From NCBI RefSeq assembly GCF_046119375.1, contig NW_027362770.1, forward strand, positions 99,572,001 to 99,636,000: DNA of 64,000 nucleotides, written 5' to 3'. Made by a program: the position numbers and the translations under genes. This document shows positions 2,104 through 52,898 of this stretch, one piece after another (the first letter of the stretch is position 1; each line of letters starts with the position of its first letter). The notes under the pieces were generated by a model that ran no database searches, was not told the DNA's origin, and worked only from the letters and a program-made list of their open reading frames with translations. The DNA comes from Phyllobates terribilis (taxonomy: Eukaryota).

Positions 2104-4524
2104 ATGGACAAAATGGAATCTTCTATACAGGGCTGCACAGGAATCAGATGGCAAGTAATATATGTCTTATTTTCTTATTTTTGTTACTCAATCTCTGGTC
2201 AGATTCATTACTCCATTGTAGAAGAAATGAGAAAAGATTCTGCAGTAGCAAATATTGCAGATGACCTTGGATTAGATATTAAGCAGCTCTCATCTAGAAA
2301 ACTGAGGATTGTGTCCAGGTCAGCAGAGAGATATTTCTATGTAAATTTAGATAATGGAAATCTGTATATAAAGGACAGGATAGATAGAGAGACATTGTGT
2401 GGTACGGAGGCTTCATGTTTCTTAACCTTTGATGCTGTGGTTGAAAATCCATTCAAGAATTTTAACATTAAAGTTGACATTCAGGATATTAATGACAATT
2501 CTCCACAGTTCTATCACAATTCAATTACTTTGGAAATAATTGAATTTACATCACCTGGAGCAAGATTTGCTTTACAAAGTGCAGAAGATCCAGATATTGG
2601 TAGTAATTCAGTGCAGACGTACAAGCTCAGTGATAATCAGTATTTTACACTCACTGAGGATATCAGAACAGATGGGAGTAAATATCCAGAGCTTGTCCTA
2701 GAGAAACCATTAGATAGAGAGAAACAAGACATTCATAGATTAATACTAACAGCCGTGGATGGAGGAAATCCTATCAGGTCTGGTACAACATTGTTAAAAA
2801 TTATTGTTGTAGATGCCAATGACAATGCCCCTATATTTATGCAAAAAATGTATAAAGTCAACCTAAAGGAAAATATCACAGTTAATTCTACAGTGATCAT
2901 GTTAAATGCTACAGACAACGATGAAGGGGTCAATGCACAGATCGCATATTCTTTTATTAAAACATCTGGAAACATACATCACACAGGAATATTTAGTATT
3001 AACCCAAAAACTGGTGAAATCAAGATCAATGGAGTCTTAGATGTTGAAGCAACAAAGAATTATGAACTTTCTGTACAAGCCAAGGATGGAGGAGGCCTTG
3101 TAGCTCATTGTAAGGTTCAGGTGGAAGTCATAGATGTAAATGACAATGCTCCTGAGATATCCATCACCTCATTATCTTCTTCTATTCCTGAGGACTCTGC
3201 CCCTGGAACAATGATCGCTCTGATTGAGGTTCATGACCAAGATTCTGGAGATAATGCAGATGTTGACTGCCAAATTCTTGAAGAAGTTCCTTTTAATTTA
3301 CTATCATCAAACACTTACTATAGACTTGTTTTAAGTGCTGCTATAGACAGAGAGAAAACATCTTCTTATAATATCACTATTATAGCTACTGATAGAGGAT
3401 CTCCACCTTTTTCCAGTAGACTAGTTCTCACATTGGATATATCAGATGTCAATGACAACCCACCAATATTTGCTAAATCTTCTTATGTGGCTTATGTGCC
3501 AGAGAACAATTTACCAGGGGCATCAATATTCAGTTTACAAGCCTCAGATCCAGACACTGGAGATAATGCAAAAATAATTTATTCAATATCCAATGCCATT
3601 AAAGAAACTTCATCAATGACATCTTATCTCTCCATCAATATTGAGACTGGAGTTCTCTATGCTCAAAGATCATTTGATTATGAGCAGAACAAGGAGTTTA
3701 TAATAGAAGTCACAGCCTCAGACAATGGATCCCCCTCTCTGAGCAGCAATGTTACATTATTTATCCATATAGTGGACCAGAATGATAATGCTCCAAAGAT
3801 CTTATACCCATCATCAGATACTGGTGGGTCAGCTGTGTTTGAGATGGTGCCTTTTGTTTCTGAGCCTGGTTCTTTAATAACTAAAGTGGTGGCAGTGGAC
3901 GTAGACTCTGGACACAATTCCTGGCTCTCTTATCATTTTATACAAGTGTCAGACTCAACTCATTTTGTCATAAGTGAGTACACAGGTGAGATCAGAACAT
4001 CACGTATCTTTCAAGAAAAAGACAAGTTAAATTACAAGATTGTGGTGATGGTGAAGGACAATGGACATCCCACTCTCTCTGCTACAACTACCTTAAGTCT
4101 TATTATTGCAGACGACTTTCAGCAGGTTGTTCCTAAGCTCAGCAACAAACTGAAAGATAAAGAAATTCAAAGCAACTTACAATTCTACTTAGTGGTTGGA
4201 CTTGCACTTATTTCTTTGCTCTTTATAATAACTGTGATGGTGGCGATTATATCCAAATGTAAGCAGCCAAAACCATTACCAGCCTTCTCTTCTCTCACTA
4301 CAAATCTGTATCCTCCAATTGATCCCAGGACCTTCTCCATGTATAGTGATGGATCGTTACCGTTACCATACTCATATAATATGTGTGTGGCACTAGATCC
4401 TGCTGAAGGTGACTTTGCTTACATGAATCCAAGTGGAAATGTTCCTGTGGAAAACCTGATTGATGCTGATAATACAGAACAAGGAACGGAATGTCTCAAC
4501 AAAATATCTCCAAGCGCTGAACAG
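2104..4524 (+). CDS. PCDHG: Protocadherin gamma variable exon V1 (signal, EC1-6, TM, variable cytoplasmic domain)
   Basis: Open frame with DxNDN, DRE/LDxE and DxD cadherin motifs, the EC1 DRETLC...C motif, TM FYLVVGLALISLLFIITVMVAII and cytoplasmic LPLPYSYNMCV. Phase-0 donor CAG|GTAAGA at 4524/4525. The exact paralog cannot be assigned. Confidence 0.95.
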
Positions 4525-5243
4525 GTAAGATGTTTTTACTTTCTGCCTGTTGTATAAGGCCTGAAATATGTACTTTGTGATTTCTAGAACTTTTTGTCCT
4601 TCAGAAAGAACTTTGTCTGCAGCTAATCACTTGCTATTATTGTAGTCTCTCTAGGAGTAAAATGGAAAATTAACAATGAAAACTTACTGATAATTTACCT
4701 GTGTCTGTAATTATCACAATATTTATGATTTAATAACTAGTGTTGAGCCACCCCCATAGTGTTCGAGTTCGGTTCGGTTCGTCGAACAACCGTGTGTTCG
4801 CCGAACTGTTCGTCGAACTGTTCGTCGAACACCTTCGAACACTGTTAAAACCAATGGCAGGCAAACAAAAACACATAGAAACACATAGAAAACACCTTCA
4901 AAGGTGTCCAAAAGCTGACAAACTGCTCAGAAGACATAACTAACACATGGAAAAGTGACAAGTACATATAGTCATGCGAAAAGAAAATAGGTGGAGGAGT
5001 AAAAGGAGGGGGAGACACAGATATAGGCATGTCATGCCCTTCTAAAATCCAAAAAGTGAGAAGCCGACACGGCCAGTCCGTTCCTGCCCGTGCCACCTCC
5101 GTGTCCCCGGGTTTGTGCCAGAGCCACGGTGGACCCTGACGGCCAGCCCCCCTCTCCCAATACTGGTGCCTGTCCGCTGTTGGGTAGAGCGAGCCCCCCT
5201 GTGGTGGAGGCAGCTCTAAGCTTTTAAATTTAAATTGTCTCTC

Positions 5244-5515
5244 TAATTTGAATGAATACACTTTAAATCCTTTTACAAGGATCTATTGGAGGGCAAGTCT
5301 CATGCCAGCAGCCGCGTAATTCCAGCTCCAGTAGCGTCCACTAAAGCTGCTGCAGTTAAAAAGCTTTTATAAGGATCGAGCTCGGCTGTCCACCGCAAGG
5401 CATCCTACCGCCAGTCCCAGCCCCTATGCCTTGGGGTGTCTCCTGATGCTCTTCACTGAGTATCCCGTGGTCCCGAAGCATTTCCTTTGAAAAAATTAAG
5501 TGTCCAAACTTCAGG
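5244..5515 (+). pseudogene. Decayed 18S rRNA fragment (helix 17/18 into V4) inside the hAT element
   Basis: CTTTAAATCC...GGATCTATTGGAGGGCAAGTCT..TGCCAGCAGCCGCG-TAATTCCAGCTCCA...GCTGCTGCAGTTAAAAAGC...GATGCTCTTCACTGAGT...CCCGAAGCATTTCCTTTGAAAAAATTA is collinear with vertebrate 18S as recalled; many substitutions and indels. Confidence 0.9.
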
Positions 5516-7430: not shown

Positions 7431-7431
7431 G

Positions 7432-9416: not shown

Positions 9417-12400
9417 TTACTCTCCCCAGGATGACACAGGGGTAGAAAAGTCGTTTCGGATCCATGATTTGTTCATCTTTATGAACGTGAGTCTGTCTAC
9501 ATTATCAGTGGAGAACCGCGTGCGCTTATCTGTCAGCACACCACCAGCAGCGCTGAACACACGTTCAGACAGAATGTTGGCTGCAGGGCATGACAAGATC
9601 TCCAAGGCGTAAGTGGCTAGCTCCGGCCATTTATCCAGATTGGAAGCCCAAAAAGAGCAAGGGTCCAGTGACACAGTCATGGCTTCAATGTTTACTTGGA
9701 GATACTCCTGTACCATCGTCTCTAGGCGTTGACTATGTGTCAGACTTCTTGTCTCCTGTGGCCTTGCAAAGGATGGGCTAAAAAAGTGGTGAAATGATTC
9801 CGCAAAATTGATGTTACCAGCAGATACTGTGGTTCTGTTACGGTTTGAGTGCTGAACACTCGACGGTCCCACGGTTGGCAAGTTGGAACTGTGAGATTCA
9901 CTACGTGCACCACTGGTGTTTTGTGTAAAAGCACATGTAAGATTCTGCAACAGTCTCTGCTGATACTCCTGCATGCGTGCATCCCTTTCTATGGCAGGAA
10001 TACTTTCTGCAAATTTACTTTTGTACCGGGGATCTAACAGTGTGGCAACCCAGTAGTCAGGATTATTTCTAATTCTCACAATTCGAGGGTCATGTTGCAG
10101 GTAGTGAAGCAAGAAGGCACTCATGTGTCTTGCGCATCCAGGAGCACCAAGTCCCTGTTGTGTTGGTGGCGAGGTAACAATCATGCTTCCTTCCTCTGTC
10201 CTCTCCCCCCAACCTCGCACAACAGAAATGTGATCAAGGTCTCCCTCATCTGATGAGTCTTCCATCAGTTCGTCCTCCACTTCTTCCTGGGCTCCTGCAC
10301 CTTCCTCACTAGTTTGGCTGCTACCATGCGCCCTGGTAAAACCATCTCCCCCACCATCACATGCCTGCCACCTTGGTGCTGCCGACCGTCTGGACCTTGC
10401 AGATGTTAGCCCTTCCGCATACAACTCCTCCTCCTCTACTTCCTCCACCTCCTCTTGTGCCACCACCTGACTCCGAAGTCTGTTTAACATGTGCTCCAGC
10501 ATGTAAATCACCGGAATAGTCATGCTGATAATGGCATCGTCAGCACTAAACATCTTCGTCGCCATTTCAAAACTGTGCAGAAGGGTGCATAGGTCCCTGA
10601 TCTGAGACCACTCCTCCAGCGTGATTTGCCCCACCTCTGGATCTCGTTGGCCCAGGCTATACGTCAGAACGTATTGCACCAGGGCTTGTCGGTGCTGCCA
10701 CAGTCGCTGCAACATGTGCAGAGTTGAATTCCACCGGGTAGGCACATCGCATTTTAGCCGGTGAAGTGGCAGGCCCAACGACTTCTGTAGAGATGTAAGT
10801 CGCTGAGCTGCGGGACGCGAACGGCGGAAGTGAGCACACAGCGACCGTGCCCTCTGCAGAAGGCCATCTAGTCCGGGATAGTGGGCTAAAAATTGCTGGA
10901 CAACCAGGTTCAACACGTGAGCCATACAAGGCACGTGTGTGACATTGCCCCGGCGAAGGGCCGCACCCAGGTTTGCAGCATTGTCGCACACGGCCTTCCC
11001 TGGTTTCAGGTCCAGTGGAGACCACCATTCATGAAATTGGTTCTCCAGAGCTGACCACAACTCCTCAGCTGTGTGACTCACATTTCCCAGACATTTCAAA
11101 GTAAAAACCGCCTGATGATGTTAAGACCTACTGCGAGCATAGTAAGGAGGTGTGCAGGATCCCTTCTGCGCAGTTAGAAAATTTGTGGCATGACCAGACA
11201 GGCTTTGGGTGCAGGTGGAGGACCGAGAGGAGGTTGAGGAGGCAGAAGCAGTGGAGGAACTTTGAGATAAAGAGGATTGACGCACAACTCATGGGGACGG
11301 CAAGACTTGGACAGCAGCCCCTTGTCCTGCTGTCACCATAGTTACCCAGTGCCCAGTCAGCGACATGTAACACCCCTGTCCATGCCTACTCATCCAAGTG
11401 TCTGTGGTGAAATGCACCCTGTCACACACAGAGTTTCTCAAAGAAGCGGTGATGTTGTGTGCGACATGCTGGTGGAGCGCAGGCACACCTTTCTTTGAGA
11501 AGTAGTGCCGACTGGGCATCTGGTACTGGGGCACTGCGACGGACATAAGGTCTCGAAAATCCTCTGTGTCCACCAGGCGGAAAGCCAGCATTTCTGTAGC
11601 CAAGAGCTTGCAGATGGTGAAATTCAACCTCTTAGCTTTCTCATGGCTAGGAGGAAATGGTCTTTTACTTGTCCACATCTGAGGGACCGAGGGCTGGCTA
11701 TTGTGCTTAGACGGGGTTGATAAGGGTGTCCCCGGCAAACTGCCGGTCTGTGAGGAAGATGCAGACGGACATGTTAGGTTGCCTTGATCCAAAGGTGGTG
11801 CTATCGATGTCGGGCAGCGCTCAACACCAGCTGGTGTTTCCACCTCCAAAGAAAATGATGACCTGCCAATCACGCTGGCTGTTGCGGGTAAAGAGGAGGC
11901 AGGTCTGCGTCCCAAAACAGGTGTGACTGCTGTCCCCCAGTCACAGAGGATGAAGAGGCCGCGGATGCACAAGATATGGCAGACGGTGGTTGGCCCGGCC
12001 GGCTAGGCCGCATTGCAGCACAGTGAGCTTCCCACTGCAACTTATGCTTCATGTCCATGTGCCGGTTCATGCATGAAGTACTCAAACTATGTATTTTTTG
12101 GCCTCTACTTAGCTTTTGCTGACAAATGTTACAGATAACACGAGTTGGGTCATCTTTATCGATCTGAAAAAATGCCCAGGCTATGCAAGGCTTAGCACCC
12201 ATGCGACCTGAAGAGCCACCACGACTTGTGGTGAGAGGCAGAGTTGTGTTTGAGGATGCAGTTGTTGACGTGCTTCCAGTACTACGTCTCTGTCCCGGAA
12301 GGTGCAACCTGACCTCGTCATCACTAGCATTCTCCTCCACCTCCTCTGCTGACCTCATCTCTTGGCTGACTGTGGGTTGACAGTCAGTGGGATCTCCAAC

Positions 12401-13119
12401 CTCATCATCATCACCCTGTGCGTTATCACACCCGTCGTCCTCAGAGCCAACCTCTTCCTGCCCTGACAAAAAACTAAAGTTGTCGCTCCAATCAGGTATT
12501 TGAGTCTCATCATCGTCTTCCTCAATGTCTCCACCAACAGGAGTTACAGTTTGGGAATGAGGGTCTACATTATGGTCAGAACCTTCAGCGTCTGGTTCTG
12601 GATCCGACTCATAAAGATTCTGGGCATCAGTGCAGATCATTTCCTCATCTGGATTCACAGAAGTGCTGGAGCCGATCTCTGATTCCCAGGCTATAGCATG
12701 AGTAAACAGCTCTGCAGACTCAACCATCTGTTCTACCTCATACTCAGACGGGCAGCTGGAGATTTGGGAGCTGTGAGGAAGCAAGTGCGATTGGGGTGAC
12801 ACCTTTGAGGACTGGAGTATTTGTGATGTTGAAGTTGATGTGGAGGAGAGAGCCCACTTAAAGGAGCACTTGATATTCGTTGAAGCACCTGCTGTTTTTG
12901 TGCCTCATCTGGAATTTGTAGCAATTGGCGTGGCCATAAGAAAGGGATCTTATCACATTGTCCGCTAAAAGAAGTAGACATTTTAGTTTGGCTGGAAGAT
13001 GGTCTTTCTTCTGCAGATGTTACTGTTGCTTTAACACCTACCCCACGGACACAACCTTTGTTCCCCTTCCCAACGCGCCTATTCCCCTTTCCACCAGCAG
13101 CAGGCCTTTTTCCACTCAT
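9417..13119 (-). pseudogene. hAT (ZBED-like) transposase, disrupted
   Basis: BED finger (AWAFF...CNICQQ...RHMDMKH), FTTDTW, VCDNAAN, CMAH, DVPTRWNST, and the C-terminal WPELA...SERVFS dimerisation domain. Two frameshifts (near 12770 and 11900) and in-frame stops at 11289 and 11121. Confidence 0.92.
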
Positions 13120-17100: not shown

Positions 17101-17381
17101 TGTATATTGTGTCTATGCAACAATGTTCATCTTCTTTTTCCACCTGTAAGGTTATACATTTTATATACTATTAAAGAAATAACTTTTCTTAGGTGTTTCG
17201 AAAGGCTGTGGATTCCTGTTTTTTTAAACTTAACATAGTGGCAGAAAAATGATAAAATACAGATAATTCACAAAACACTTACTTTATGCTTTTAGAATAT
17301 AAAGAGCATTTAAACTGAATATGTTTAAAAATTCAAATTTCCATTTCAAAGTAATTGAAAGACATTGCAATTCTGTATTTT

Positions 17382-17406
17382 CACCTCTGAGCGCCGCTGT
17401 TTAACC
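17382..17406 (+). promoter_or_regulatory. CSE for V2
   Basis: Identical 25-bp CSE. Confidence 0.9.
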
Positions 17407-17623
17407 ATAAAGGAGAAAAATGCAAAACTAGAAATCCACTGGTATTTTCCTTTGTCACATTCATTGCTGATCTGCAGAAAGAATCACAGACATTTTCTGC
17501 ATTCTCCTACACAGAGATAAAATTTAAAAAGATAATTAAAAATATGATGAAGATTTTTCGATTTAACATTTGCATTTGATGATAAAGCTTTGCTGGATAT
17601 TTTGGGGAAAATCATCACTGAGG

Positions 17624-20044
17624 ATGGACAAGATGGAGCCTCCTATACAGGGCTGTGCAGGAATCAGATGGCAAGTAATATATGTCTTATTTTCTTATTT
17701 TTGTTACTCAATCTCTGGTCAGATTCATTATTCCATTGTAGAAGAAATGAGGAAAGACTCTGTTATAGCAAATATTGCAGATGACCTTGGATTAGATATT
17801 AAGCAGCTCTCATCCAGAAAACTGAGGATTGTGTCCAGATCAGCAGAGAGATATTTCTATGTAAATTTAGATAATGGAAACCTGTATATAAAGGACAGGA
17901 TAGACAGGGAGACATTGTGTGGTTCGGAGGCTTCATGTTTCTTAACCTTTGATGCTGTGGTTGAAAATCCATTCAAGAATTTTAACATTAAACTTGACAT
18001 TCAGGATATAAATGATAATGCTCCCCAGTTCTATCAAAATAAAATTACCTTAGAAATTGTTGAATTGACATCACCAGGAGCAAGATTTGCTTTACAAAGT
18101 GCAGAAGATCCAGATATTGGTAGTAATTCAGTGCAGACATACAAGCTCAGTGATAATCAGTATTTTACACTCACTGAGAATATCAGAACAGATGGAAGTA
18201 AATATCCAGAGCTTGTCCTAGAGAAACCATTAGATCGAGAAACACAAGATACTCATGAATTAATACTAACAGCCTTAGATGGAGGAAATCCTATCAGGTC
18301 TGGTACAAAATCACTAAAGATCATTGTTATAGATGGTAATGATAATGCTCCCCTATTTGCTCAAGACATGTATACAGTCAACTTAAAGGAAAACATCCCA
18401 GTTAATTCTACAGTGATCACATTAAATGCTTCTGACAATGATGAAGGGATCAATGCACAGATCACATATTCTTTTATGAAAACATCTGGAAACATCCATC
18501 ACACAGGAATATTCAGCATTAATCCAAATACTTTTGAAATCAAGATCAATGGAAACTTGGATTTTGAAGTAACAAAGAATTATGAACTTTCTGTACAAGC
18601 CAAGGATGGAGGAGGCCTTGTAGCTCATTGCAAGGTTCTGGTGCAAGTCATAGATGTAAATGACAATGCTCCTGAGATATCCATCACCTCATTATCTTCT
18701 TCTATTCCTGAGGACTCTGCCCCTGGAACAATGATCGCTCTGATTGAGATTCATGACCAAGATTCTGGCGATAATGCAGATGTTGACTGCCAAATTCTTG
18801 AAGATGTTCCCTTTAAATTATTATCATCAAACACTTACTATAGACTTGTTTTAAGTGCTGCCATAGACAGAGAGAAAACATCTTCTTATAATATCTCTGT
18901 TATAGCCACAGATAGAGGATCTCCACCTCTTTCCAGTACACGAGTTCTCACATTGGATATATCAGATTTCAATGACAACCCACCAATATTTGCTAAATCT
19001 ACTTATGTGTCTTATGTGCCAGAGAACAATTTACCAGGAGCTTCAATATTCAGTATACAAGCCTCAGATCCAGACACTGGAGACAATGCAAAAATAATTT
19101 ACTCAATTTCCAACACCATTACAGAAACTCCATCAATGACATCTTATCTCTCCATCAATATAGAGACTGGAGTTCTCTATGCTCAAAGATCATTTGATTA
19201 TGAGCAGAACAAGGAGCTTATAATAGAAGTCACTGCCTCAGACAATGGATCCCCCTCTCTGCGCAGCAATGTTACATTATTTATCCATATAGTAGACCAG
19301 AATGATAATGCACCAAAGATCTTATACCCATCACCAGATACCGGTGGGTCAGCTGTATTTGAGATGGTTCCTTTTGTTTCTGAGCCTGGTTCTTTAATAA
19401 CTAAAGTGGTGGCAGTGGATGCAGACTCCGGACACAATTCCTGGCTCTCTTATCATTTTATACAATTGTCAGACTTAAATCATTTTGTGATAAGTGAGCA
19501 CACAGGAGAGATCAGAACATCACGTATTTTTCAAGAAAAGGACATGTTAAATTACAGGATTTTGGTAATGGTGAAGGACAATGGACATCCCACTCTCTCT
19601 GCTACAACCACCTTAAGTCTTATTATTGCAGATGACTTTCAGCAGGTTGTTCCTAAGCTCAGCAACAAACTGAAAGATGACGAAACTCAAAGCAACTTAC
19701 AATTCTACTTAGTGGTTGGACTTGCACTTATTTCTTTGCTCTTTATAATAACTGTGATGGTGGCGATTATATCCAAATGTAAGCAGCCAAAACCATTACC
19801 AGCCTTCTCTTCTCTTACTACAAATCTGTATCCTCCAATTGATCCCAGGACCTTCTCCATGTATAGTGATGGATCGTTACCATTACCATACTCATATAAT
19901 ATGTGTGTGGCACTAGATCCTGCTGAAGGAGACTTTACTTACATGAATCCAAGTGGAAACGTTCCTGTGGAAAACCTGATTGATGCTGATAATACAGAAC
20001 AAGGAACTGAATGTCTCACTGAAGCTTCTCTGAGCACAGAACAG
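17624..20044 (+). CDS. PCDHG: Protocadherin gamma variable exon V2
   Basis: Intact ORF starting MDKMEPP; an in-frame upstream ATG at 17579 is an alternative start; donor CAG|GTAAGA at 20044/20045. Confidence 0.95.
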
Positions 20045-20950: not shown

Positions 20951-21684
20951 AATTTAGCTATGCTGACTCTCTTCCCCACAATGACTCATACAGGAGGTTA
21001 GACCAGGAGAGCCGAGCTGTATTTTTATATATCACTCACTGAGAAACTTACTCTGAGCGATGGTAGAGGTGTGTTATTCTTTCTATTGATTGTTGCTGTC
21101 TCATTATGATTTGTCAGCATCAAATAGGGGGAAGTAAAAACCCCCCAGTGAAAACTGTTTGACCCATATGGAAATTAACTTATTAGGGGCCAAGTACTTT
21201 GATTGCTAATATCTCCGCAACATGAAAGCGACATTTAAAAAAAAATTTTAGTTCTAAAATGCATCCACTATTACATTGTATGTCCAATTAAACATTAAAA
21301 ATTTGGTGAACAACTTTCAGGCCAAGTTCCAATGTTGCATATCAATTTCAAAACTTATTCAAAATTCTACATCAATCTACAAAGCGATATTTATCAGTGT
21401 AATGTTTTGCAAAAATTGAAATAAGCGATGACATCTTCAGGATAAAAGAATGCTCTGCAGTTTTCAAATCCAAAGCATTGGGCAATTTACACTATGTTCT
21501 TTTCAGAGCAAGTGCACAAGTTTTCCTAAAGTTTCATTCATATTCTGATTATTTAAATGACATTTTCCTTTTTCTGACTTTTCTACTCTATTACAATGAC
21601 ATGATTTTCTCATAGTTTGTAAATAGGAAAAAGCTTGAAAATTAAAACACATTTCACATGGTTGTTTCCTTTGGACAATTGATT

Positions 21685-23536
21685 GTCTAGTGACCCTATT
21701 CCCTCACATCTCCTTCAGTCCCTTTCTCCAGCTGTCACCACTCACCTAACTAAAATTTTCAACCTCTCCCTCTCATCTGGTATCTTTCCCTCTTCTTTTA
21801 AACATGCCAGCATACATCCATTACTTAAAAAATCATCCCTTGACCAGAACTGCACGGCCAACTACAGACCTGTTTCCAATCTTACATTTATCTCTAAACT
21901 CCTGGAATGCCTGGTTCATTCCCATCTAATCTGCTATCTCTCAGACAATTCTCTTCTTGACCCTCTACAATCTGGTTTCAGCTCTTTACATTCTACTGAA
22001 ACTGCCCTCACTAAAGTCTCTAAAGCTCTACTAACAGCTAAATCTAATGGTCACTACTCCCTGCTGATTCTCCTGGATCTCTCTGCAGCATTCGACACTG
22101 TGGATCACCAGCTCCTCCTCACTATGCTCTGCACTATTGGCCTCAAGGACACTGTTCTCACCTGGTTCTCCTCCTATCTCTCTGACCGCTCCTTCTCTGT
22201 GTCTTTTGCCGGCTCCTCCTCCTCTCTCCTTCCCCTTACTGTCGGGGTTCCTTAAGGATCAGTCCCAGGCCCCCTTATTTTCCCCTTATACACCGCTCCT
22301 ATTGGACAATCAGCAGATTCAGTTTTCAGTATGATCTCTATGCTGATGACACCCAATTATATATCTCTGCTCCGGACATCACCCCTGCATTACTACAAAA
22401 GACCAGTGATTGTCTTTCTGCTGTGTCTAACATTATGTCCTCCCTCTGCCTAAAACTGAATCTGTCAAAAACTGAACTACTCGTATTTTCTCCCTCCACT
22501 AACCTACCTGTGCCCGATATTGCCATTTCCATTTGTGGCTCAACCATTGCTCCCCAGCAACAAGCCCGCTGTCTTGGGGTCATTCTTGATTCAGATCTTT
22601 CCTTCACTCCTCACATCAAATCACTCGCTCGTTCATGTCATCTACACCTCAAAAACATCTCAAGAATCAGGACATTTCTCACCTTTGACTCAGCAAAAGC
22701 TCTTACTATAGCTCTTATTCATTCTTGTCTCGACTATTGCAACTCTGTACTAATTGGTCTCCCCTCCTACTAAACTCTCCCCTCTCCAATCCATCCTTAA
22801 CACAGCATCAAGGATCATATACCTCGCCAACCGCTACACCGATGCCTCTTCCCTGTGCCAATCATCGCATTGGTTACCCATTTAAAAAAGAGTTCAATTT
22901 AAACTTATCACGCTTACCCACAAAGCGCTCCATGCTTCAGTACCCCCCTACGTCTCCTCACTTGTCTCAGTCTACCACCCTACACGTGCCCTCTGTTCTG
23001 CCAATGACTTAAAACTAAAATCCTCCATAATCCAAACTTCCCATTCCCGTCTCCAAGATTTCTCGCGTGTTGCGCCAATACTTTGGAATGCACTACCCAG
23101 GACAGTTCGATTAATTCCCAATACCCACAGTTTCAAGCTGACCCTAAAAACCCATTTCTTTAGACTGGCGTATCGCCTAAACACACTATCTGTCCGTCCC
23201 AGTTTTCCCCCATATTAAAATCTTTTTCAATTTCAGGTTCATACCATCCATGTACTTATCAGCCTCGGTCAGGACTGTACACATACTGGCTGGCGACCAG
23301 TCCATGTATTATTATTTATCCTATTTAGTATATCAAGGCTGCATTATACAATATATGTAGACTTTACCTTTTGTGTCTCCCCCATTTCCTCATAGACTGT
23401 AAGCTTGCGAGCAGGGCCCTCACTCCTTTTCATTTGAGAAATGCTTATTCTGTATTGTTTGCATAAGTCCCCCCCCCTAAAATTGTAAAGTGCTGCGGAA
23501 TATGTTGGCGCTATAAAAATAAAAATTATTATTATT
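21685..23536 (+). mobile_element. 5'-truncated L2-clade LINE
   Basis: RT motifs [20 protein letters not shown] and YADDTQLY; 3' tail GCTGCGGAATATGTTGGCGCTATAAAAATAAA plus (ATT)n; candidate TSD AATTGATT (21677-21684, 23537-23544), single-copy in the paralog near 40207. Confidence 0.92.
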
Positions 23537-34530: not shown

Positions 34531-34819
34531 TATAAGTAACTTTTCAACTGTACTATGTAACTATGCTTATCTTTTTATAAAGCTTATGCACTTATAACTT
34601 TATTATTTTTAAATAATTTAATTTTCTTGGTTGTTTTTAATGGCTGTTTATTTCTGTTTTATAAAAACTGAATATAATAACGGTTTAATAATAAAATGCA
34701 GAAAACTGGAAAAAAAGTTCACTGAATGTTTTATCTTTAGAATACTAACAGCAACACAAATTAAATATTTTAAATACATCAAATTTATATTTTATAAAGA
34801 AATTGCAATTCTTTATTTT

Positions 34820-34844
34820 CACCTCTGAGCGCCGCTGTTTAACC
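34820..34844 (+). promoter_or_regulatory. CSE for V4
   Basis: Identical 25-bp CSE. Confidence 0.9.
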
Positions 34845-35072
34845 ATAAAGTAAAAAAATGCAGAACTGAAAATCCATTGGAATTTTCCTTTGTCACTCAC
34901 ATTGCTGATCTGCAGAAGGAACCACAGACATTTGCTGGATTCTCCTGGACACACAGCTAAAAGGATATGAATTGAAAACACAATTACAGATATCATGAAT
35001 ATTGTTCTATTTAACATTTGCATTTGATGAGAAAGCCTTACTGGATTATTTTAGGAAAAATTATCCCTGAAG

Positions 35073-37493
35073 ATGGACAGGATTAAATCTCCTATACAGG
35101 GCTACACAGGAATCAGATGGCAAGTAATATATGTGTTATTTTCTTATCTCTATTACTCAGTCTCTGGTCAGGTTCATTATTCCATTGTAGAAGAAATGAG
35201 GAAAGACTCTGTTATAGGAAATATTGCAGATGACCTTGGATTAGATATTAATCAGCTCTCATCTAGAAAACTGAGGATTGTGTCCAGGTCAGCAGAGAGA
35301 TATTTCTATGTAAATCTTAATAATGGAAATCTGTATATAAGGGACAGGATAGACAGAGAGACATTATGTGGATTAGATGTTTCTTGTTTCTTAACCTTTG
35401 ATGCTTTGGTGGAAAATCCTTTCAATAATTTTAAGATCAAAGTTGACATTCAGGATATTAATGACAATTCTCCACAGTTTTATCATAAAACAATTACTTT
35501 GGAAATAATCGAATTTACATCAGAAGGAGCAAGATTTGCTTTAGAAAGTGCAGAAGATCCAGATATTGGTAGTAATTCAGTGCAGACATACAAGCTCAGT
35601 GATAATCAGTATTTTATACTCACTGAGAATATCAGAACAGATGGGAGTAAATATCCAGAGCTTGTCCTAGAGAAACCATTAGATCGAGAAACACAAGAAA
35701 CTCATGAATTAATACTAACAGCCTTGGATGGAGGAAATCCTATCAGGTCTGGTACAATATTAATAAATATAATTGTTATAGATGGTAATGACAATGCCCC
35801 TATATTTACCCAGGATATGTATAAAGTCAATTTAAAAGAAGACATCCCAATTAATTCTACAGTGATCATTTTAAATGCAACAGACAATGATGAAGGGGTT
35901 AACGCACAAATTGCATATTATTTCAGAAAAAGCTCAGGATACATCCATGATACAGGAACATTTAGCATAAATACAAGTACTGGTGAAATCAAGACTCATA
36001 AAAATATAGATTTTGAAGTAATAGAAAATTATGAATTGTCTGTACAAGCCAAGGATGGAGGAGGCCTTGTAGCTCATTGTAAGGTTCTGGTGGAAGTCAT
36101 AGATGTAAATGACAATACTCCTGAGATATCCATCACCTCACTATCTTCTCCTATTCCTGAGGATTCTGCCCCTGGAACAATGATCGCTGTGATTGAAGTC
36201 CATGATAAAGATTCTGGAGATAATGCAGATGTTGACTGCCAAATTCTTGAAGATGTTCCCTTTAATTTATTGTCATCAGACACTTACTATAGACTTGTTT
36301 TACAAACCACTATTGACAGAGAAAGAACACCATGTGTTAATATTACTGTTATTGCTACAGATAGAGGATCTCCTTCTCTTTCCAGTACACGAGTTCTCAC
36401 ATTGGATATATCAGATGTCAATGACAACCCACCAATATTTACTAAATCTACTTATGTGTCTTATGTGCCAGAGAATAATTTACCAGGAGCTTCAATATTC
36501 AGTATACAAGCCTCAGATCCTGATATTGGAGACAATGCAAAAATAATTTACTCAATTTCTAACACCATTACAGAAACTCTATCAATGACGTCTTATCTCT
36601 CCATCAATATAGAGACGGGAGTTCTCTATGCTCAAAGATCATTTGATTATGAGCAGAACAAGGAGTTTATAATAGAAGTTACAGCCTCAGACAATGGATC
36701 CCCTTCTCTGAGCAGCAATGTTACATTATTTATCCATATTGTGGACCAGAATGATAATGCACCAAAGATCTTATACCCATCACCAGATAATGGTGGGTCA
36801 GGTGCATTTGAGATGGTTCCTTTTGTTTCTGAGCCTGGTTCTTTAATAACTAAAGTGGTGGCAGTGGATGCAGATTCTGGACATAATTCCTGGCTCTCTT
36901 ATCATTTTATACAATTGTCAGACTTAAATCATTTTGTGATAAGTGAGTACACAGGGGAGATTAGAACATCACGTATCTTTCAAGAAAAGGACATGTTAAA
37001 TTACAGGATTGTGGTAATGGTGAAGGACAATGGACATCCCACTCTCTCTGCTACAACTACCTTAAGTCTTATTATTGCAGATGACTTTCAGCAGGTTGTT
37101 CCTAAGCTCAGCAACAAACTGAAAGATGAAGAAACTCAAAGCAACTTACAATTCTACTTAGTGCTTGGGCTTGCACTTATTTCTTTGCTCTTTATAATAA
37201 CTGTGATGGTGGTGATTATATCCAAATGTAAGCAGCCGAAACCATTACCAGCCTTCTCTTCTCTCACTACAAATCTGTATCCTCCGATTGATCCCAGGAC
37301 CTTCTCCATGTATAGTGATGGATCGTTACCTTTACCATACTCATATAATATGTGTGTGGCACTAGATCCTGCTGAGGGAGACTTTACTTACATGAATCCA
37401 AGTGGAAATGTTCCTGTGGAAAACCTGATTGATGCTGATAATACAGAACAAAGAAGTGAAAATCTCAAAGAAACATCTCCGTGTGAAGAACAA
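35073..37493 (+). CDS. PCDHG: Protocadherin gamma variable exon V4
   Basis: Intact ORF; donor CAA|GTAAGA at 37493/37494. Confidence 0.95.
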
Positions 37494-38649: not shown

Positions 38650-39806
38650 TGGAAAGAACACCAGGTCACCCTGACTCAGGCGTCCTGAAGCATGGAATAG
38701 CGAGGAACCACTCGTTGTGCAAATTCAATTAAAAAAAGGGGGAATCATAGAATCATAGAATGGTAGAGTTGGAAGGGACCTCCTGGGTCATCTGGTCCAA
38801 CCCCCTGCTCAACGCAGGATTCACTAAATCATCTCAGACAGATGTCTGTCCAGCCTCTGTTTGAAGACGTCCATTGAAGGGGAACTCACCACCTCTCGTG
38901 GCAGCCTGTTCCACTCATTAATCACCCTAACTGTCAAAAAGTTTTTTCTAATATCTAATCTGTGTCTCCTCCCATTTAGTTTCATCCCATTGCTTCTAGT
39001 CTTTCCTTGTGCAAATGAGAATAAAGATGATCCTTCTACAATGTGACAGCCCTTGACATATTTGTAGACAGCTATTAAATCTCCTCTCAGTCTTCTTTTT
39101 TGCAAGCTAAACATTCCCAAATCCTGCAACCGTTCCTCATAGGACATGGTTTGCAGACCAGTCACCATTCTGGTCGCTCTTCTCTGAACTTGCTCCAGTT
39201 TGTCTATGTCTTTTTTAAAATGTGGTGCCCAAAACTGTACACAGTATTCCAGATGAGGTCTGACCAAAGAGGAGTAAAGACCGATAATGACTTCACGTGA
39301 TCTAGACTGTATGCTTCTGTTAATACATCCCAGAATTGTATTTGCCTTTTTTGCTGCTGCATCACACTGTTGACTCATGTTCAGTCTATGATCTATTAGT
39401 ATACCTAAGTCTTTTTCACATGTACTGTTGCTTAGCTCTATTCCTCCCATTCTGTATATGCTTTTTTCATTTTTATTGCCCAGATGTAGTACTTTGCATT
39501 TTTCCCTGTTAAAAACCATTCTGTTGGTTGCTGCCCACTGCTCCAGTTTATTTAGGTCTTTTTGAATCCTCTCTCTCTCTCTTCTCTAGTATTAGCTATC
39601 CCTCCTAGCTTTGTGTCATCAGCAAATTTAATCAGTTTACCCTCAATTCCTTCATCTAAATCATTTCTCAGAGCTGTGAGAAAGAACGCAGGTTGGAGCA
39701 TTCGAAACGCGTTGCTATTCCTGTTACGACTATGGAAACTGATTTTATGGACAAAAGTTCTGTTTGCTGTACCTAAAAAGCTGGAACCCTCCCCTTTTTT
39801 TACTTG
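38650..39806. mobile_element. Short Penelope-like insertion hosting a CR1
   Basis: 12-bp direct repeat AATTGTTAAAAG flanks it (38638-38649, 39807-39818); inverted CAATT..AAAAAAAGGGG segments; GAAACGCGTTG motif. The family call is inference. Confidence 0.55.
38743..39664 (-). mobile_element. 5'-truncated CR1 LINE
   Basis: KFADDTKL, FNREKCKVLHLG, RPHLEYCVQFW and RRLRGDLI motifs; 8-bp tail repeat (TTCTATGA)n at 38743-38760. Confidence 0.95.
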
Positions 39807-41915: not shown

Positions 41916-42231
41916 TTAACAGCTGTAAATCATGCCACTAGATACTTTTCTATTCCCTGGATGAAATTGATAAACATAAGTCATTTTTTATGTGAATATG
42001 TAACTACACTTATCCTCTTTTTAAGCCTGTGTAGTTATATTCTTTTTTTAAATAAGTCAATTTTCTTGAATGCTTTTAATGGCTGTTATTCCTACTTTAT
42101 AAAAAACTGAATATAATAACAGTTTAATAATAAACTACAAAATCAAACAGTGAATGTTTTGTTTTTAGAATATAAACCGCAATTGAAATTAAATATCTAT
42201 ACTGTATGAAGACATTGCAATTCTGTAATTT

Positions 42232-42256
42232 CACCTCTGAGCGCCGCTGTTTAACC
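42232..42256 (+). promoter_or_regulatory. CSE for V5
   Basis: Identical 25-bp CSE. Confidence 0.9.
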
Positions 42257-42481
42257 AGAAAATGGAAAATTGCAGAACTAAAAATCCACTGGTATTTTCC
42301 TTTGTCACTCACATTGCTGATCTGCAGAAAGAACCACAGACATTTTCTGGATTCTCCTGGACACAGAGCTAAGGATACAATTTGAAAAGGCAATTACAGT
42401 ATCTTGTACATTGTTCTGTTTAACATTTGCATTTGATGATAAAGCCTTACTGGATATTTTTTGGAAAATTATCCCCTGAGG

Positions 42482-44902
42482 ATGGACAGAATGAAATCTC
42501 CTATACAGGGCTGCACAGGAATCAGATGGCAAGTAACATATGTCTTATTTTTTTATCTTTATTACTCAGTCTCTGGTCAGGTTCATTATTCCATTGTGGA
42601 AGAAATGAGGAAAGACTCTGTTATAGCAAATATTGCAGATGACCTTGGATTAGATATTAATCAGCTCTCATCTAGAAAACTGAGGATTGTGTCCAGATCA
42701 GCAGAGAGATATTTCTATGTAAATCCTAACAATGGAAACCTGTATATAAAGGACAGGATAGACAGAGAGACATTGTGTGGGAGAGAGACTTCATGTGTCT
42801 TAACCTTTGATGCTGTTGTTGAAAATCCTTTTAATAATTTTAAGATCAAGGTTGACATTCAGGATATTAATGATAATGTTCCTCAATTCTATCATAATAC
42901 TATTACATTGGAAATAATTGAATTGACATCACCAGGAGCAAGATTTGCTTTACAAAGTGCAGAAGATCCAGATTTTGGTAGTAATTCAGTGCAGACATAC
43001 AAGCTCAGTGATAATCAGTATTTTACAGTCACTGAGAATATCAGAACAGATGGGAGTAAATATCCAGAGCTTGTCCTAGAGAAACCATTAGATAGAGAGA
43101 AAAAAGACATTCATAGACTAATACTAACAGCCTCGGATGGAGGAAATCCTATCAGGTCTGGAACAACATTACTAAAAGTTATCGTTATAGATGCCAATGA
43201 CAATGCTCCTATATTTATGCAAAATTTGCATAAAGTCAACTTAAAGGAAAACATCCCAGTTAATTCTACAGTGATTATGTTAAATGCTACAGACAATGAT
43301 GAAGGGGTCAATGCGCAGATCACATATTCTTTTATTAAAACATCTGGAAACATCCATCACACAGGAATATTTAGTATTAACCCAAAAACTGGTGAAATCA
43401 AGATCAATGGAAACTTGGATTTTGAAGTAACAAGCAATTATGAATTGTCTGTACAAGCCAAGGATGGAGGAGGCCTTGTAGCTCATTGTAAGGTTCTGGT
43501 GGAAGTCATAGATGTAAATGACAATGCTCCTGAGATATCCATCACCTCATTATCTTCTCCTATTCCTGAGGACTCTGCCCCTGGAACAATGATCGCTCTG
43601 ATTGAGGTTCATGACCAAGATTCTGGAGATAACGCAGATGTTAACTGCCAAATTCTTGAAGAAGTTCCTTTTAATTTATTATCATCAAACACTTACTATA
43701 GACTTGTTTTAAGTTCTGCTATAGACAGAGAGAAAACATATTTTTACAATATCTCCATTATAGCAACAGATAGAGGATCTCCACCTCTTTCCAGTACACA
43801 AGTTCTCACATTGGATATATCAGATGTCAATGACAACCCACCAATATTTTCTAAATCTAATAATGTGGCTTATGTGCCAGAGAACAATTTACCAGGGGCA
43901 TCAATATTCAGCATACAAGCCTCAGATCCTGACACTGGAGACAATGCAAAAATAATTTACTTAATTTCCAGTGCCATTGCAGAAACTCCATCAATGACAT
44001 CTTATCTCTCCATCAATATAGAGACGGGAGTTCTCTATGCTCAAAGATCATTTGATTATGAGCAGAACAAGGAGTTTATAATAGAAGTCACAGCCTCAGA
44101 CAATGGATCCCCCTCTCTGAGCAGCAATGTTACATTATTTATCCATATAGTAGACCAGAATGATAATGCACCAAAGATCTTATACCCATCACCAGATAAT
44201 GGTGGGTCAGCTGTGTTTGAGATGGTGCCTTTTGTTTCTGAGCCTGGTTCTTTAATAACTAAAGTAGTAGCTGTGGATGCAGACTCTGGACATAATTCCT
44301 GGCTCTCTTATCATTTTATACCAATGTCAGACCAAAATCATTTTGTGATAAGTGAGTACACAGGTGAGATCAGAACATCACGTATCTTTCAAGAAAAGGA
44401 CATGTTGAATTACAAGATTGTGGTGATGGTGAAGGACAATGGACATCCCACTCTCTCTGCTACAACCACCTTAAGTCTTGTTATTGCAGATGACTTTCAG
44501 CAGGTTGTTCCTAAGCTCAGCAACAAACTGAAAGATGAGGAAACTCAAAGCAACTTACAATTCTACTTAGTGGTTGGACTTGCATTAATTTCTTTGCTCT
44601 TTATAATAACTGTGATGGTGGCGATTATATCCAAATGTAAGCAGCCAAAACCATTACCAGCCTTCTCTTCTCTCACTACAAATCTATATCCTCCAATTGA
44701 TCCCAGGACCTTCTCCATGTATAGTGATGGATCGTTACCTTTACCATACTCATATAATATGTGTGTGGCACTAGATCCTACTGAAGGTGACTTTACTTAC
44801 ATGAATCCAAGTGGAAATGTTCCTGTGGAAAACCTGATTGATGCTGATAATACAGAACAAGGAACTGAAAATTTTGAAGAAGCTTCTCCAAGTGTTGAAA
44901 AG
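42482..44902 (+). CDS. PCDHG: Protocadherin gamma variable exon V5
   Basis: Intact ORF from ATG 42482 (the ORF track starts at a TTG); weak donor AAG|GTATTA at 44902/44903. Confidence 0.93.
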
Positions 44903-45472
44903 GTATTATTTTAGATCTTTATATTCACTTGGGAGACTCTTTAATATATATACCTTATGCCTTTCAAATTAAGGTGTAATCATATCATTCTTATTATTTG
45001 TTCTTAAAAACCATACACAAATTTTTGCCTACTTTAACTTATTAAAACAAAACAAGCAAGTAGATAACTGTCCCTCACCAAATTTCTTCAATAAATATGA
45101 CTCTCTAAATATCCAATATGTATCAAGCTAAGTGTAAGAAATGGTTAATCTTGAAACATAACTTTTAGCCATTCTAATAGGTGCTTATCCCAAAGCCAAC
45201 ACTTTGGTGTGTTAGTCTATTAGCTTCCCATACTTACGTTTGTACACTAGGCTTCCCTGAATAACCCTAGTCGATGAAACACATTGGATGACACATAGGG
45301 AAATTTTATGGCAGTCTATATGAAGGAATAGCTGTGTACTACCCTTGTTAGTTCAGTAGTCATTGTGTACCCTAGAATCCAAGGGCCTGACAGTATCTAC
45401 AGTAGGGCATTTTGTATGTGCTGCCTTGATCTGAAATGGAAACCCCAAGACTTTCATGTGGTAGGTGAGAAC

Positions 45473-49725: not shown

Positions 49726-50233
49726 TGATTACCTCTCTAGACAATTAGCTGATTAAATCTATTTAGGAATTTTTTATAATGACATTTCCTTCAGTTATTT
49801 ATTTTTTTCTACTCCCAGAGAACCCCTTTAAAGATATCTATTTTCAATAATTGGAGCACTTTGTTGTTTAATTGCTTTTACTTCTGCATATCCTTTCAAT
49901 CTGTAGGTTATGCTATTTCTCCTAATAACCTGAAAGCTGCAATATCTTATTTAGCGCTTTTAAATGTGTATAGCAAAATTTGTCTTGTATTTCCTGCTTT
50001 CTATATGTTAATATAATATTAGTTTCATTATTATTATTGAAAAAGGCAAAAAAGAAAAATATATGTCTTTGTGGTAACAAATTCTTAAAACTGTTTAATA
50101 GTTGGTGTGTATATGAAAATTGGACATGGTAACATACAGCAAATTAAAAATATGCTTGAGAATATCAGTATTCTAAGAATTTAGGGTTTATACTTAGAAA
50201 ATAATCTTTTTGAACATTGCAATTCTGTATTTT

Positions 50234-50258
50234 CACCTCTGAGCGCCGCTGTTTAACC
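50234..50258 (+). promoter_or_regulatory. CSE for V6
   Basis: Identical 25-bp CSE. Confidence 0.9.
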
Positions 50259-50492
50259 ACTAAAAAGAAAAATGCAGAACTGAAAATCCACTGGTATTTT
50301 CCTTTGTCACATTCATTGCTGATCTGCAGAAAAAAACACACAAAACAGACATTTTCTGGATTCTCCTGGACTCAGCTAAGGATTTAATTTAAAAATAGAA
50401 TTAAACATATCTTGGACATTTTTCTGTTGAAGATTTACATTGGATGATAAAGTCTTACTGTACATTTTATGGAGAATAAATAATCATTGAGG

Positions 50493-52898
50493 ATGGACAA
50501 CCTTCGATCTCTTATACGAGGCTGCAAAGGAATCAGGTGGCAAGTAATATATGTCTTATTTTCTTATGTATATTCAATCTATGGTCAGATTCATTACTCC
50601 ATTGCAGAAGAAATGAGGAAAGACTCTGTTATAGCAAATATTGCAGATGACCTTGGATTAGATATTGATCAGCTCTCATCTAGAAAACTGAGGATTGTGT
50701 CCAGAGCTTCAGAGAGATATTTCTATGTAAATATGGATAATGGCAATCTGTATATTAAGGACAGAATAGACAGAGAGACCTTGTGTAAGAGAACAGCTTC
50801 ATGTTTTTTAACCTTTGATGCTGTGGTTGAAAATCCTTTTAATAATTCTAAAATCAAAGTTGAAATTCAGGATATAAATGACAATTATCCACAGTTCTAT
50901 CATGATAAATTTTTATTGAAAATAATTGAATTGACATCACCGGGAGCAAGATTTGCTTTACAAAGTGCAGAAGATCCAGATATTGGTAGTAATTCAGTGC
51001 AGACATACAAGCTCAGTGATAATCAGTATTTTATACTCACTGAGAATATCAGAACAGATGGGAGTAAATATCCAGAGCTTGTCCTAGAGAAACCATTAGA
51101 TCGAGAAACACAAGATACACATGAATTATTTTTATTAGCGCTGGATGGAGGAAATCCTATCAAGTCTGGTACAACATTACTAAAAATTATTATTATAGAT
51201 GCTAATGACAATGCTCCCCTATTTGGTCAAGACATGTATAAGGTTGCCTTAAGGGAGAACATCCCAGTTAATTCTACAGTGATCATGTTAAATGCTTCAG
51301 ACAAGGATGAGGGAGTCAATGCACAGATCACATATTCTTTTAGTAAAACATTTGGAAATATTCATCACTCAGGAATATTTAGTATTAACCCAAATACTGG
51401 TGAAATCAAGATCAATGGAAACTTGGATTTTGAAGTCACTGAAAATTATGAATTGTCTGTAGAAGCCAAGGATGGAGGAGGCCTTGAAGCCCATTGTAAG
51501 GTACTGGTGGAACTCATAGATGTAAATGACAATGCTCCTGAGATATCCATCACCTCATTATCTTCTTCTATTCCTGAGGATTCTGCACCTGGAACAATGA
51601 TCGCTCTGATTGAGGTTCATGATCAAGATTCTGGAGATAATGCAGATGTTGACTCCCAAATTCTTGAAGATGTTCCCTTTAATTTATTGTCATCAGACAC
51701 TTATTATAGACTTGTTTTACAGACCATAATAGACAGAGAAAAAGCACCTTGTTATAATATCACTATTATAGCTACAGATAGAGGATCTCCATCTCTTTCT
51801 AGTACACGAGTTCTCAGATTGGATGTATCAGATGTCAATGACAATCCACCAATGTTTTCAAAATCTAATTATGTGGCTTATGTGCCAGAGAACAATTTAC
51901 CAGGAGCTTCAATATTCAGTATACAAGCCTCAGATCCAGACACTGGAGACAATGCAAAAATAATTTATTCAATTTCCAGTGCCATTACAGAAACTCCATC
52001 AGTGACATCTTATCTCTCCATCAATATAGAGACCGGAGTTCTCTATGCTCAAAGATCATTTGATTATGAGCAGAACAAGGAGTTTATAATAGAAGTCACA
52101 GCCTCAGACAATGGATCCCCCTCTCTGAGCAGCAATGCTACATTATTTATTAATATAGTGGACAAGAATGATAATGCACCAAAGATCTTATACCCATCAC
52201 CAGATACCGATGGGTCGGTAGTCTTTGAGATGGTGCCTTTTGTTTCTGAACCTGGTTCTTTAATAACTAAAGTGGTGGCAGTGGACGTAGACTCTGGACA
52301 CAATTCCTGGCTCTCTTATCATTTTATACCAGTGTCAGACCAAAATCATTTTGTCATAAGTGAGCACACAGGGGAGATCAGAACATCATGTATCTTTCAA
52401 GAAAAGGACATATTAAATTACAAGGTTGTGGTGATGGTGAAGGACAATGGACATCCCACTCTCTCTGCTACAACCACCTTAAGTCTTGTTATTGCAGATG
52501 ACTTTCAGCAGGTTGTTCCTAAGCTCAACAACAAATTGAAAGTTGAAGAAACTCAAAGCAACTTACAATTCTACTTAGTGGTTGGACTTGCACTTATTTC
52601 TTTGCTTTTTATAATAACTGTGATGGTGGCGATTATATCCAAATGTAAGCAGCCAAAACCATTACCAGCCTTCTCTTCTCTCACTACAAATCTGTATCCT
52701 CCAATTGATCCTCGGACCTTCTCCATGTATAGTGATGGATCGCTACCTTTACCATACTCATATAATATGTGTGTGGCACTAGATCCTGCTGAAGGTGACT
52801 TTACTTACATGAATCCAAGTGGAAATGTTCCTGTGGAAAACCTGATTGATGCTGATAATACAGAACAAGCAACTGAGCTTGTTCCAAGCACTTACCAG
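50493..52898 (+). CDS. PCDHG: Protocadherin gamma variable exon V6
   Basis: Intact ORF starting MDNLRSL; donor CAG|GTAATA at 52898/52899. Confidence 0.94.

Follow-up and report, generated by a model that had tools for sequence, protein, structure and literature searches.

Clustered protocadherins give neurons individual identity by strictly homophilic binding. The locus examined here raises the question of whether tandem exons of this family keep one history along their whole length, or whether segments of them have passed between neighbours. It lies in a stretch of 64,000 nucleotides from the frog Phyllobates terribilis (contig NW_027362770.1), referred to below as the window. Six open reading frames (ORFs) on its + strand, named V1 to V6, run collinearly from a signal peptide (SP) to a GT splice donor; all are intact and 802-809 codons long. 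Judged from their alignments, the six copies have incongruent histories and, in defined segments, paralogs are nearer to one another than to orthologs, silent sites included. The whole pattern is probably the outcome of interlocus gene conversion that, after old duplications, overwrote different exon segments in different pairs.

Six tandem exons of gamma-B type

Pairwise identity between the six exons is 89-93%, and their protein alignment is nearly gapless. V1 matches the Pfam families Cadherin_2, Cadherin (in five stretches) and Cadherin_C_2; across its six extracellular cadherin domains (EC1-EC6) it aligns with the structure of mouse protocadherin gamma-B4, 6E6B (E 6e-202). On these sequence grounds we classify the six as a tandem series of gamma-B-like variable exons of the clustered protocadherin family, each preceded by a predicted promoter of its own. 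The donors that close them read GTAAG, GTAAA, GTATT or GTAAT. Database proteins 98-100% identical to the six exons are those of Phyllobates terribilis, and close relatives occur in Ranitomeya, Dendrobates and Anomaloglossus.

2104-4524, + strand: V1 variable exon, with signal peptide, EC1-EC6, transmembrane segment (TM) and short cytoplasmic part; GT donor after 4524.
2200-2502 (EC1), 2503-2829 (EC2), 2830-3150 (EC3), 3151-3462 (EC4), 3463-3792 (EC5), 3793-4119 (EC6), + strand: domains of V1.
17624-20044, + strand: V2 variable exon; it groups, by segment, with V1 (SP-EC1, EC4), its Ranitomeya ortholog P0010 (EC2-EC3) and V4 (EC5-EC6).
25405-27831, + strand: V3 variable exon, whose sister over the SP-EC3 part is V4.
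35073-37493, + strand: V4 variable exon, a mosaic of three parts: V3-like at the 5' side (to alignment position ~1213), ancestral-like in an EC4 patch of its own, and V2-like in EC5-EC6.
42482-44902, + strand: V5 variable exon, grouping in EC1 with its Ranitomeya ortholog P0012 and V3/V4, and near V1 in EC3-EC4.
50493-52898, + strand: V6 variable exon, with orthologs P0027, P0029 and P0024 in Ranitomeya and P0044 in Anomaloglossus.

Segments of the exon follow different trees

The pairwise homoplasy index (PHI) of the six copies is strongly negative with all sites (z -9.1, p≤0.0005) and with one site per codon (z -7.0); it is significant at third positions (p 0.0065) and marginal when only strictly silent codons are used (p 0.04). 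The informative splits occur in clusters along the exon. Maximum-likelihood trees unite V1 with V2 in SP-EC1; V3 with V4, V1 with V5 and V2 with V6 in EC2-3; V4 with V6 in EC4; and V2 with V4 in EC5-6. In approximately unbiased (AU) tests with all sites, each region's tree is rejected by the data of the other regions.

A partition minimising parsimony length over all 105 topologies, with 300 site shuffles as the null, divides the exon into four blocks: SP-EC1; EC2 with most of EC3; the end of EC3 with EC4; and EC5 to the end. Tree length drops from 317 to 278, the best of the shuffles being 295 (p≤0.003, for all sites and for third positions). Third positions alone recover the same first two breakpoints (p≤0.003). 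The three breakpoints are as follows.

V1 2469-2490 (alignment 372-393), + strand: breakpoint 1, ~12-33 bp from the EC1/EC2 boundary, just before it.
V1 3039-3055 (alignment 942-958), + strand: breakpoint 2, inside EC3, 95-111 bp before the EC3/EC4 boundary.
V1 3472-3482 (alignment 1375-1385), + strand: breakpoint 3, 10-20 bp past the EC4/EC5 boundary.

A preliminary description of this DNA had called the mosaic domain-level, which is roughly right: two breakpoints fall within ~30 bp of a border, but one sits ~100 bp inside EC3. The coincidence with domain borders, two of three, is not significant by a rough estimate.

Nearest neighbours change accordingly along the exon. They are V1-V2 and V3-V4 in EC1 (16 differences each), V3-V4 in EC2 (11) and V1-V5 in EC3 (21). 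In EC4, V1, V2 and V5 differ mutually at 15-18 sites, V4 from V6 at 26, and V4 or V6 from any other copy at 30-38. V2-V4 is the closest pair of EC6 (13 differences) and shows 16 differences in EC5, other pairs showing 16-28; below 19 in EC5 are only V2-V4 and V5-V6 (17). A 3SEQ-like test describes V4 as V3-like to alignment position ~1213 and V2-like beyond (p x 60 = 0.02, with all sites and with third positions). In a GENECONV-like scan for exact matches at all sites, a single tract, shared by V3 and V4, survives correction; restricted to silent sites of the six copies, the scan yields nothing.

36379-37088 (V2: 18930-19639), + strand: V4 tract nearest V2, from the end of EC4 through EC6; the (V2,V4) group has a Shimodaira-Hasegawa-like approximate likelihood-ratio (SH-aLRT) support of 96.
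25798-25954 (V4: 35460-35616), + strand: V3/V4 identical tract of 157 bp, Bonferroni p 0.003 in the run test.

Synonymous divergence (dS) among the copies is 0.40 in EC3, 0.17 in EC5 and 0.13 from the transmembrane segment through the cytoplasmic part, an EC3/EC5 ratio of 2.3.

Orthology gives way to within-species grouping

Exon DNA from outside the window was compared for a further P. terribilis paralog, P0038 (locus L001, no overlap with the window), for P0027, P0032 and L5b (= P0006) of Ranitomeya imitator, and for P0026, P0044 and L2c of Anomaloglossus. The order of the R. imitator exons P0006, P0010, P0012, P0029 and P0028 matches their pairing with V1, V2, V5, V6 and P0038 in the whole-exon tree; these five lineages are therefore older than the split of Phyllobates and Ranitomeya. 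Those of V6 and V3/V4 would also predate the split from Anomaloglossus.

With two orthologous pairs compared at a time, sites supporting orthology and sites supporting within-species grouping are distributed as follows.

V6/P0027 and V1/L5b, SP-EC3: orthology 43, within-species 12.
V6/P0027 and V1/L5b, EC5-EC6: orthology 3, within-species 13.
V6/P0027 and V1/L5b, silent codons: orthology 8 and within-species 2 in EC2-3, 1 and 13 from EC5 through the cytoplasmic part (Fisher p 4.9e-4).
V6/P0044 and V4/P0026, EC3: orthology 24, within-species 0.
V6/P0044 and V4/P0026, EC5 to the cytoplasmic part: orthology 2, within-species 21.
V6/P0044 and V4/P0026, silent codons: orthology 11 and within-species 0 in EC2-4, 0 and 12 from EC5 through the cytoplasmic part (Fisher p 7.4e-7).

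EC2-EC3, together with EC1 for V5 and V6, follow orthology; EC5, EC6, the transmembrane segment and the cytoplasmic part group by species. Such a switch along one exon, as read from these sites, is the classical signature of interlocus conversion. Paralogs are nearer than orthologs for V6 in EC5, EC6, the transmembrane-cytoplasmic part and a short EC2 block described below, for V1/V2 in SP-EC1 and for V1/V5 in EC3; in SP-EC1, EC3 and EC6, paralogs show a lower dS than orthologs do.

The R. imitator ortholog of V6, P0027, is nearer to its local paralogs in EC4 and EC5 (14-15 and 7-10 differences; loci L004 and L005) than to V6 (30 and 19), so that the converted segment differs between genera. 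In Anomaloglossus, insertions of ~7.5 and 11 kb, annotated as introns, interrupt the P0044 and P0026 exons (L002 3001-4005/11522-12901; L003 10001-10324/21468-23549), and the next exon (L002 19855-22290) carries an in-frame stop.

Exchanged and inherited similarities

The groupings of the preliminary description had been drawn from amino acid motifs, nearly all of which we find in the alignment as reported: DIKQ, CGxEAS and NPFKNFNIK in EC1 of V1 and V2, and CGxDVS in that of V3 and V4; DREKxDIHRL, SFIKTSG and NPKTG in EC2-3 of V1 and V5, TSEG, YYFRKSS and KTHKN in V3 and V4, and ETQDTHE, APLF, NASD and NPNT in V2 and V6; LVLQTxID, PCxNIT and GSPSLSS in EC4 of V4 and V6. DINQ, given as a mark of V3 and V4, is present there but occurs in V5 too, which had been missed. 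The motifs do not all have the same origin.

For V1 and V2, amino acid quartets with P0006 and P0010 count 1 orthology versus 6 within-species sites in SP-EC1, 10 versus 2 in EC2-3 and 0 versus 6 in EC4-6 (contrasts p 0.006 and 0.0015). In SP-EC1, dS is 0.20 between V1 and V2 versus 0.33 between V1 and its Ranitomeya ortholog. The likeness of V1 and V2 in EC1 is, on these counts, best described as within-species exchange. The DREKxDIHRL type of V1 and V5 is common to the orthologous lineages and is therefore inherited; their dS in EC3, 0.13 versus 0.33 between V1 and its Ranitomeya ortholog, points to exchange there. The EC3 type of V3 and V4 must be old, since Anomaloglossus P0026 has it also.

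Two proposed pairs did not stand as exchanges. ETQDTHE, shared by V2 and V6 in EC2-3, is the state of outgroup frogs and is found in Anomaloglossus as well: the grouping is mostly shared ancestry, and a V2-V6 exchange is rejected. The likeness of V4 and V6 in EC4 is mostly ancestral too, its Q/K-T-T states recurring in outgroup frogs as well as in P0044 and P0026 of Anomaloglossus. As 13 of 82 bases of the patch concerned differ between the two copies, exchange between them is likewise rejected.

36297-36378 in V4 (V6: 51714-51795), + strand: hypervariable EC4 patch of 82 bp, ~gamma-B 375-399, with 13-25 differences between copies.

In this patch V1, V2, V3, V5 and all three Ranitomeya exons, that of the V6 ortholog included, carry one derived haplotype. 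Among V1, V2 and V5, dS over EC4 is 0.09-0.10. On these data the sequence exchanged in EC4 is this derived haplotype, which V4 and V6 escaped.

A near-invariant block in EC2

An EC2 stretch of about 140 bp had been reported as almost invariant, synonymous sites included, and it is: 6 of 139 sites and 2 of 47 third positions vary (exon overall 19.9%), and no other window of the exon varies so little (permutation p 0.0004).

V1 2577-2715 (alignment 480-618); 18097-18235, 25884-26022, 35546-35684, 42955-43093 and 50963-51101 in V2 to V6, + strand: EC2 block, 139 bp.

In seven other sequences 23 of the 139 sites vary, and 12 of the 47 third positions. Within the block, 6 sites separate V6 from its Ranitomeya ortholog, but only 0-3 separate it from the window paralogs. 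The best reading of these counts is species-specific homogenisation atop strong protein constraint. The idea that the invariance is due to a functional element acting strictly at the nucleotide level is unsupported, given the 12 variable third positions in the seven other sequences; no GC-rich CTCF-like motif is visible in the block. A milder constraint at the nucleotide level may still act on it.

An EC2-EC3 cassette and the binding interfaces

P0038, the seventh P. terribilis paralog, is a single uninterrupted ORF. Compared with its Anomaloglossus counterpart L2c, it has 31 orthology versus 6 other sites in SP-EC1 and 13 versus 1 in the variable part of EC4. The core of EC3 tells a different story.

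35847-36086 in V4 (V3: 26185-26424), + strand: EC3 core of V3/V4 type, also present in P0038 and Anomaloglossus P0026; 7 fixed differences separate the two EC3 types.

At these fixed differences P0038 has 6 of 7 states of the V3/V4 type and 0 of the other; L2c has 0 of the V3/V4 type and 7 of 7 of the other (p 5.8e-4). From P0038 to V4, dS is 0.07 in EC2 and 0.27 in EC3; from P0038 to L2c, it is 0.20 and 0.53. The Ranitomeya ortholog P0028 is without the V3/V4 type of EC3. This segment pattern, with the state of P0028, therefore indicates that lineages within Phyllobates exchanged the EC2-EC3 pair but retained EC1 and EC4. P0038, and not any of the six window copies, would be the best case for the creation of a new recognition code. 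Because EC2 binds the partner's EC3, an interface compatible with itself is carried along by a tract that spans the two domains. We suggest, tentatively, that conversion could move EC2-EC3 as a cassette on an EC1/EC4 frame, the recipient staying homophilic and becoming distinct from both parents: a possible, though rather doubtful, natural route to new neuronal identity codes.

Positions in gamma-B numbering were counted from the 6E6B alignment and are approximate near loops. The EC1 motif at amino acids 118-121 flanks the equivalent of F86 of gamma-B, on which the EC1:EC4 contact is centred in the published interface. Amino acid 158 corresponds to gamma-B 125, 283-286 to ~250-253 and 144 to 111; 125 and 253 have been published as a pair of interacting positions that bear on specificity. 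Glu158 (gamma-B 125) co-occurs with Tyr or Ile283 and Arg285 (~250-252): Tyr/Arg in V3, V4 and P0026, Ile/Arg in P0038.

V6 and its Ranitomeya orthologs have Ser in place of Phe adjoining the F86-equivalent position of EC1 (amino acid 120, ~50847). V6 also has Lys at the 111 equivalent (amino acid 144, ~50919) and Glu near the 294 equivalent (amino acid 333, ~51486); the two may form a charge pair like the published K111:D294, one that is not kept in all orthologs.

As summarised in PMC5106212 and bioRxiv 10.1101/493106, specificity is determined by the EC1:EC4 and EC2:EC3 interfaces alike, and chimeras made in the laboratory failed to bind their parent (Rubinstein et al. 2015). Those chimeras likewise joined EC1, EC2-3 and EC4 of close isoforms in new combinations; the chimeras of the frog are natural and deduced from sequence. 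These mosaics may plausibly have new specificities that are compatible with themselves.

Weighing the explanations

The explanation that we favour is non-allelic homologous recombination between neighbouring exons, in tracts of ~0.1-0.7 kb. Exchange would have taken place between V1 and V2 twice, in SP-EC1 and in EC4-EC6, between V1 and V5 in EC3-EC4, and between V2 and V4 in EC5-EC6; all six would have been homogenised in the 139-bp EC2 block, and the V3/V4 lineage would have exchanged EC2-EC3 with the outside paralog P0038. From EC5 to the cytoplasmic part the exons would evolve in concert in each species, the EC2-EC3 cores mostly retaining orthology. Conversion as the mechanism in place of crossover, the direction of each event and the protection of EC2-EC3 by selection for distinct binding are our inferences.

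Several results weigh against this explanation. When the six copies are compared at strictly silent codons only, the partition loses its significance (p 0.2-0.5) and AU tests mostly do not reject a single tree; only V3 with V4 in EC2-3 is robust there, V1 with V2 and V4 with V6 not being recovered. These codons, silent in all six copies, by construction omit the variable patches that hold the signal. Incongruence of the domain trees, as first proposed, thus holds for all sites and for third positions, whereas at strictly silent codons it is marginal or absent. The pairwise silent-site contrasts of V1-V2 and V1-V5 with the ortholog are suggestive only (p 0.08-0.09), and the V1/V2 case rests on amino acid quartets and the DNA of one ortholog. 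The proportion of G and C at third positions (GC3) is 0.22-0.42 and does not rise in EC5-EC6, the converted parts; raised GC3 is a frequent companion of conversion, not a defining one. The interrupted Anomaloglossus exons may be pseudogenes or assembly problems, and none of the short-read contigs, which are too short, spans a junction. Since a single exact tract is significant, most events must be old and their borders blurred; recent conversion as the main source is rejected on the same scan. Patchwork conversion between paralogs, as the preliminary description had it, is supported nonetheless, chiefly by the cross-species comparison and not by the silent sites of the window. In place of the reshuffling that it proposed, we find as the dominant process homogenisation sparing EC2-EC3, which is the published pattern.

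The window alone leaves room for convergence in several patches. Convergent or parallel amino acid change, with selection on few interface positions and no exchange of DNA, would suit the loss of the V4+V6 group in EC4 and of the V1+V2 group in EC1 at strictly silent codons, the non-significant silent-only partition, the mostly replacement sites of the common EC4 patch and the position of the motifs at or beside published interface residues. It is nevertheless quite improbable: the partition and PHI are significant at third positions, silent-codon quartets change history along the exon, paralog dS is below ortholog dS in SP-EC1, EC3 and EC6, and many of the 'shared' states are ancestral. We also consider it unlikely that the exons were born as hybrids, by unequal crossing-over in misaligned exons during expansion of the array, V4 for example from a V3-like 5' part and a V2-like 3' part. 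One long two-parent pattern does fit V4, both flanks of V2, V3 and V4 are common over kilobases, as for tandem duplication units, and the tools used do not distinguish crossover from conversion. However, flanks (65-87% identical) are far more diverged than exons (89-93%), there are several short patches with different partners, and the 139-bp block is common to all six. Moreover, copies with orthologs in other genera are nearer to local paralogs in EC5-EC6, and exchange must therefore have followed the duplications.

An assembly artefact, in which similar copies were mis-joined, is very improbable. Copies 7-11% different are easily separated by long reads, all six ORFs are intact, and the arrangements of V2, V5 and V6 recur in Ranitomeya orthologs. 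Short-read contigs from three studies contain the local V4 sequence with scattered single-nucleotide polymorphisms and no joints; against this, such independent contigs are too short to bridge the junctions, and the database proteins of P. terribilis derive from the same assembly. Interlocus conversion after old duplications remains the likely account of the array as a whole.

Surroundings of the exons

The exons share a single orientation and are mostly spaced by 7-10 kb, with a V1-V2 gap of 15.5 kb. Upstream of every ATG, at 243-263 bp, lies an invariant 29-bp core (within ~45 bp) with a CGCT box, in 6 exact copies where 0 are expected; we take it to be the conserved promoter element of the clustered protocadherin family. 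Constant exons are absent from the window. Ranitomeya isoforms of relatives bear Cadherin_tail (PF15974) and have one gene end in common, an indirect sign that variable exons of this kind may be spliced to shared constant exons.

1841-1869 (V1), 17379-17407, 25162-25190, 34817-34845, 42229-42257 and 50231-50259, + strand: promoter element, exact matches in the upstream alignment.
9417-12802, - strand: ORFs with BED zinc finger and hAT dimerisation domains, a hAT-type DNA transposon between V1 and V2.
21683-22255, + strand: reverse-transcriptase fragment (RVT_1).
32390-33457, + strand: intact-looking Tc1/Sleeping-Beauty-like transposase ORF of 355 amino acids (HTH_Tnp_Tc3_2, DDE_3, HTH_SB), between V3 and V4.
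38824-39519, - strand: ORF without Pfam match, resembling a retroelement reverse-transcriptase tail.

Past the donor, the first 80-160 bp are common to V1-V4 (4525-4604, 44903-45000 and 52899-53000 of the window were inspected), and the sequence downstream of V5 and V6 is unrelated except for a short ATCTTTATAT motif. The hAT transposon probably explains both the long V1-V2 spacing and the end of V1 downstream flank homology after ~80 bp.

Known arrays and the meaning of the frog mosaics

MHC genes and immunoglobulin V segments are known for short-tract exchange among tandem paralogs, which gives segment-wise different trees; there a diversity-generating role is directly supported. In the frog array homogenisation dominates, and a diversifying role is only a hypothesis. 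Closer parallels come from the family itself. Regional gene conversion is well documented in clustered protocadherins (Noonan et al. 2004, as cited in PMC4978886), in fugu (PMC1852091), in Xenopus tropicalis (PMC4978886) and in anole (PMC2764143). Like vertebrate protocadherin arrays, the frog array has tandem variable exons whose 3' ectodomains and cytoplasmic part are homogenised in each species. As in those arrays, dS is highest in EC2/EC3 and lowest in EC5/EC6, and the ratio of 2.3 resembles the 'low-level' values of Xenopus, mouse and anole; while fugu 3' halves are >99% identical, the frog events are old and their tracts short.

The kind of event is thus already known for the family, and the added point is its reach into EC1-EC3. 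In published arrays these domains are described as spared, whereas in the frog exchange is seen also in SP-EC1 (V1/V2), in the EC2 block (all six), in EC3 (V1/V5) and in the EC2-EC3 cassette (V3/V4 lineage and P0038). Trees of EC1-EC3, widely used as 'conversion-free', can therefore mislead in young paralog groups. The frog copies further offer natural chimeras of known parentage. Most differences between V1 and V2 fall in EC2-EC3 and most of those between V3 and V4 in EC3-EC6, while V4 and P0038 have EC2-EC3 in common and differ in EC1 and EC4. Such pairs are suited to weighing the two binding interfaces against each other, and bear on how new specificities arise without non-binding intermediates.

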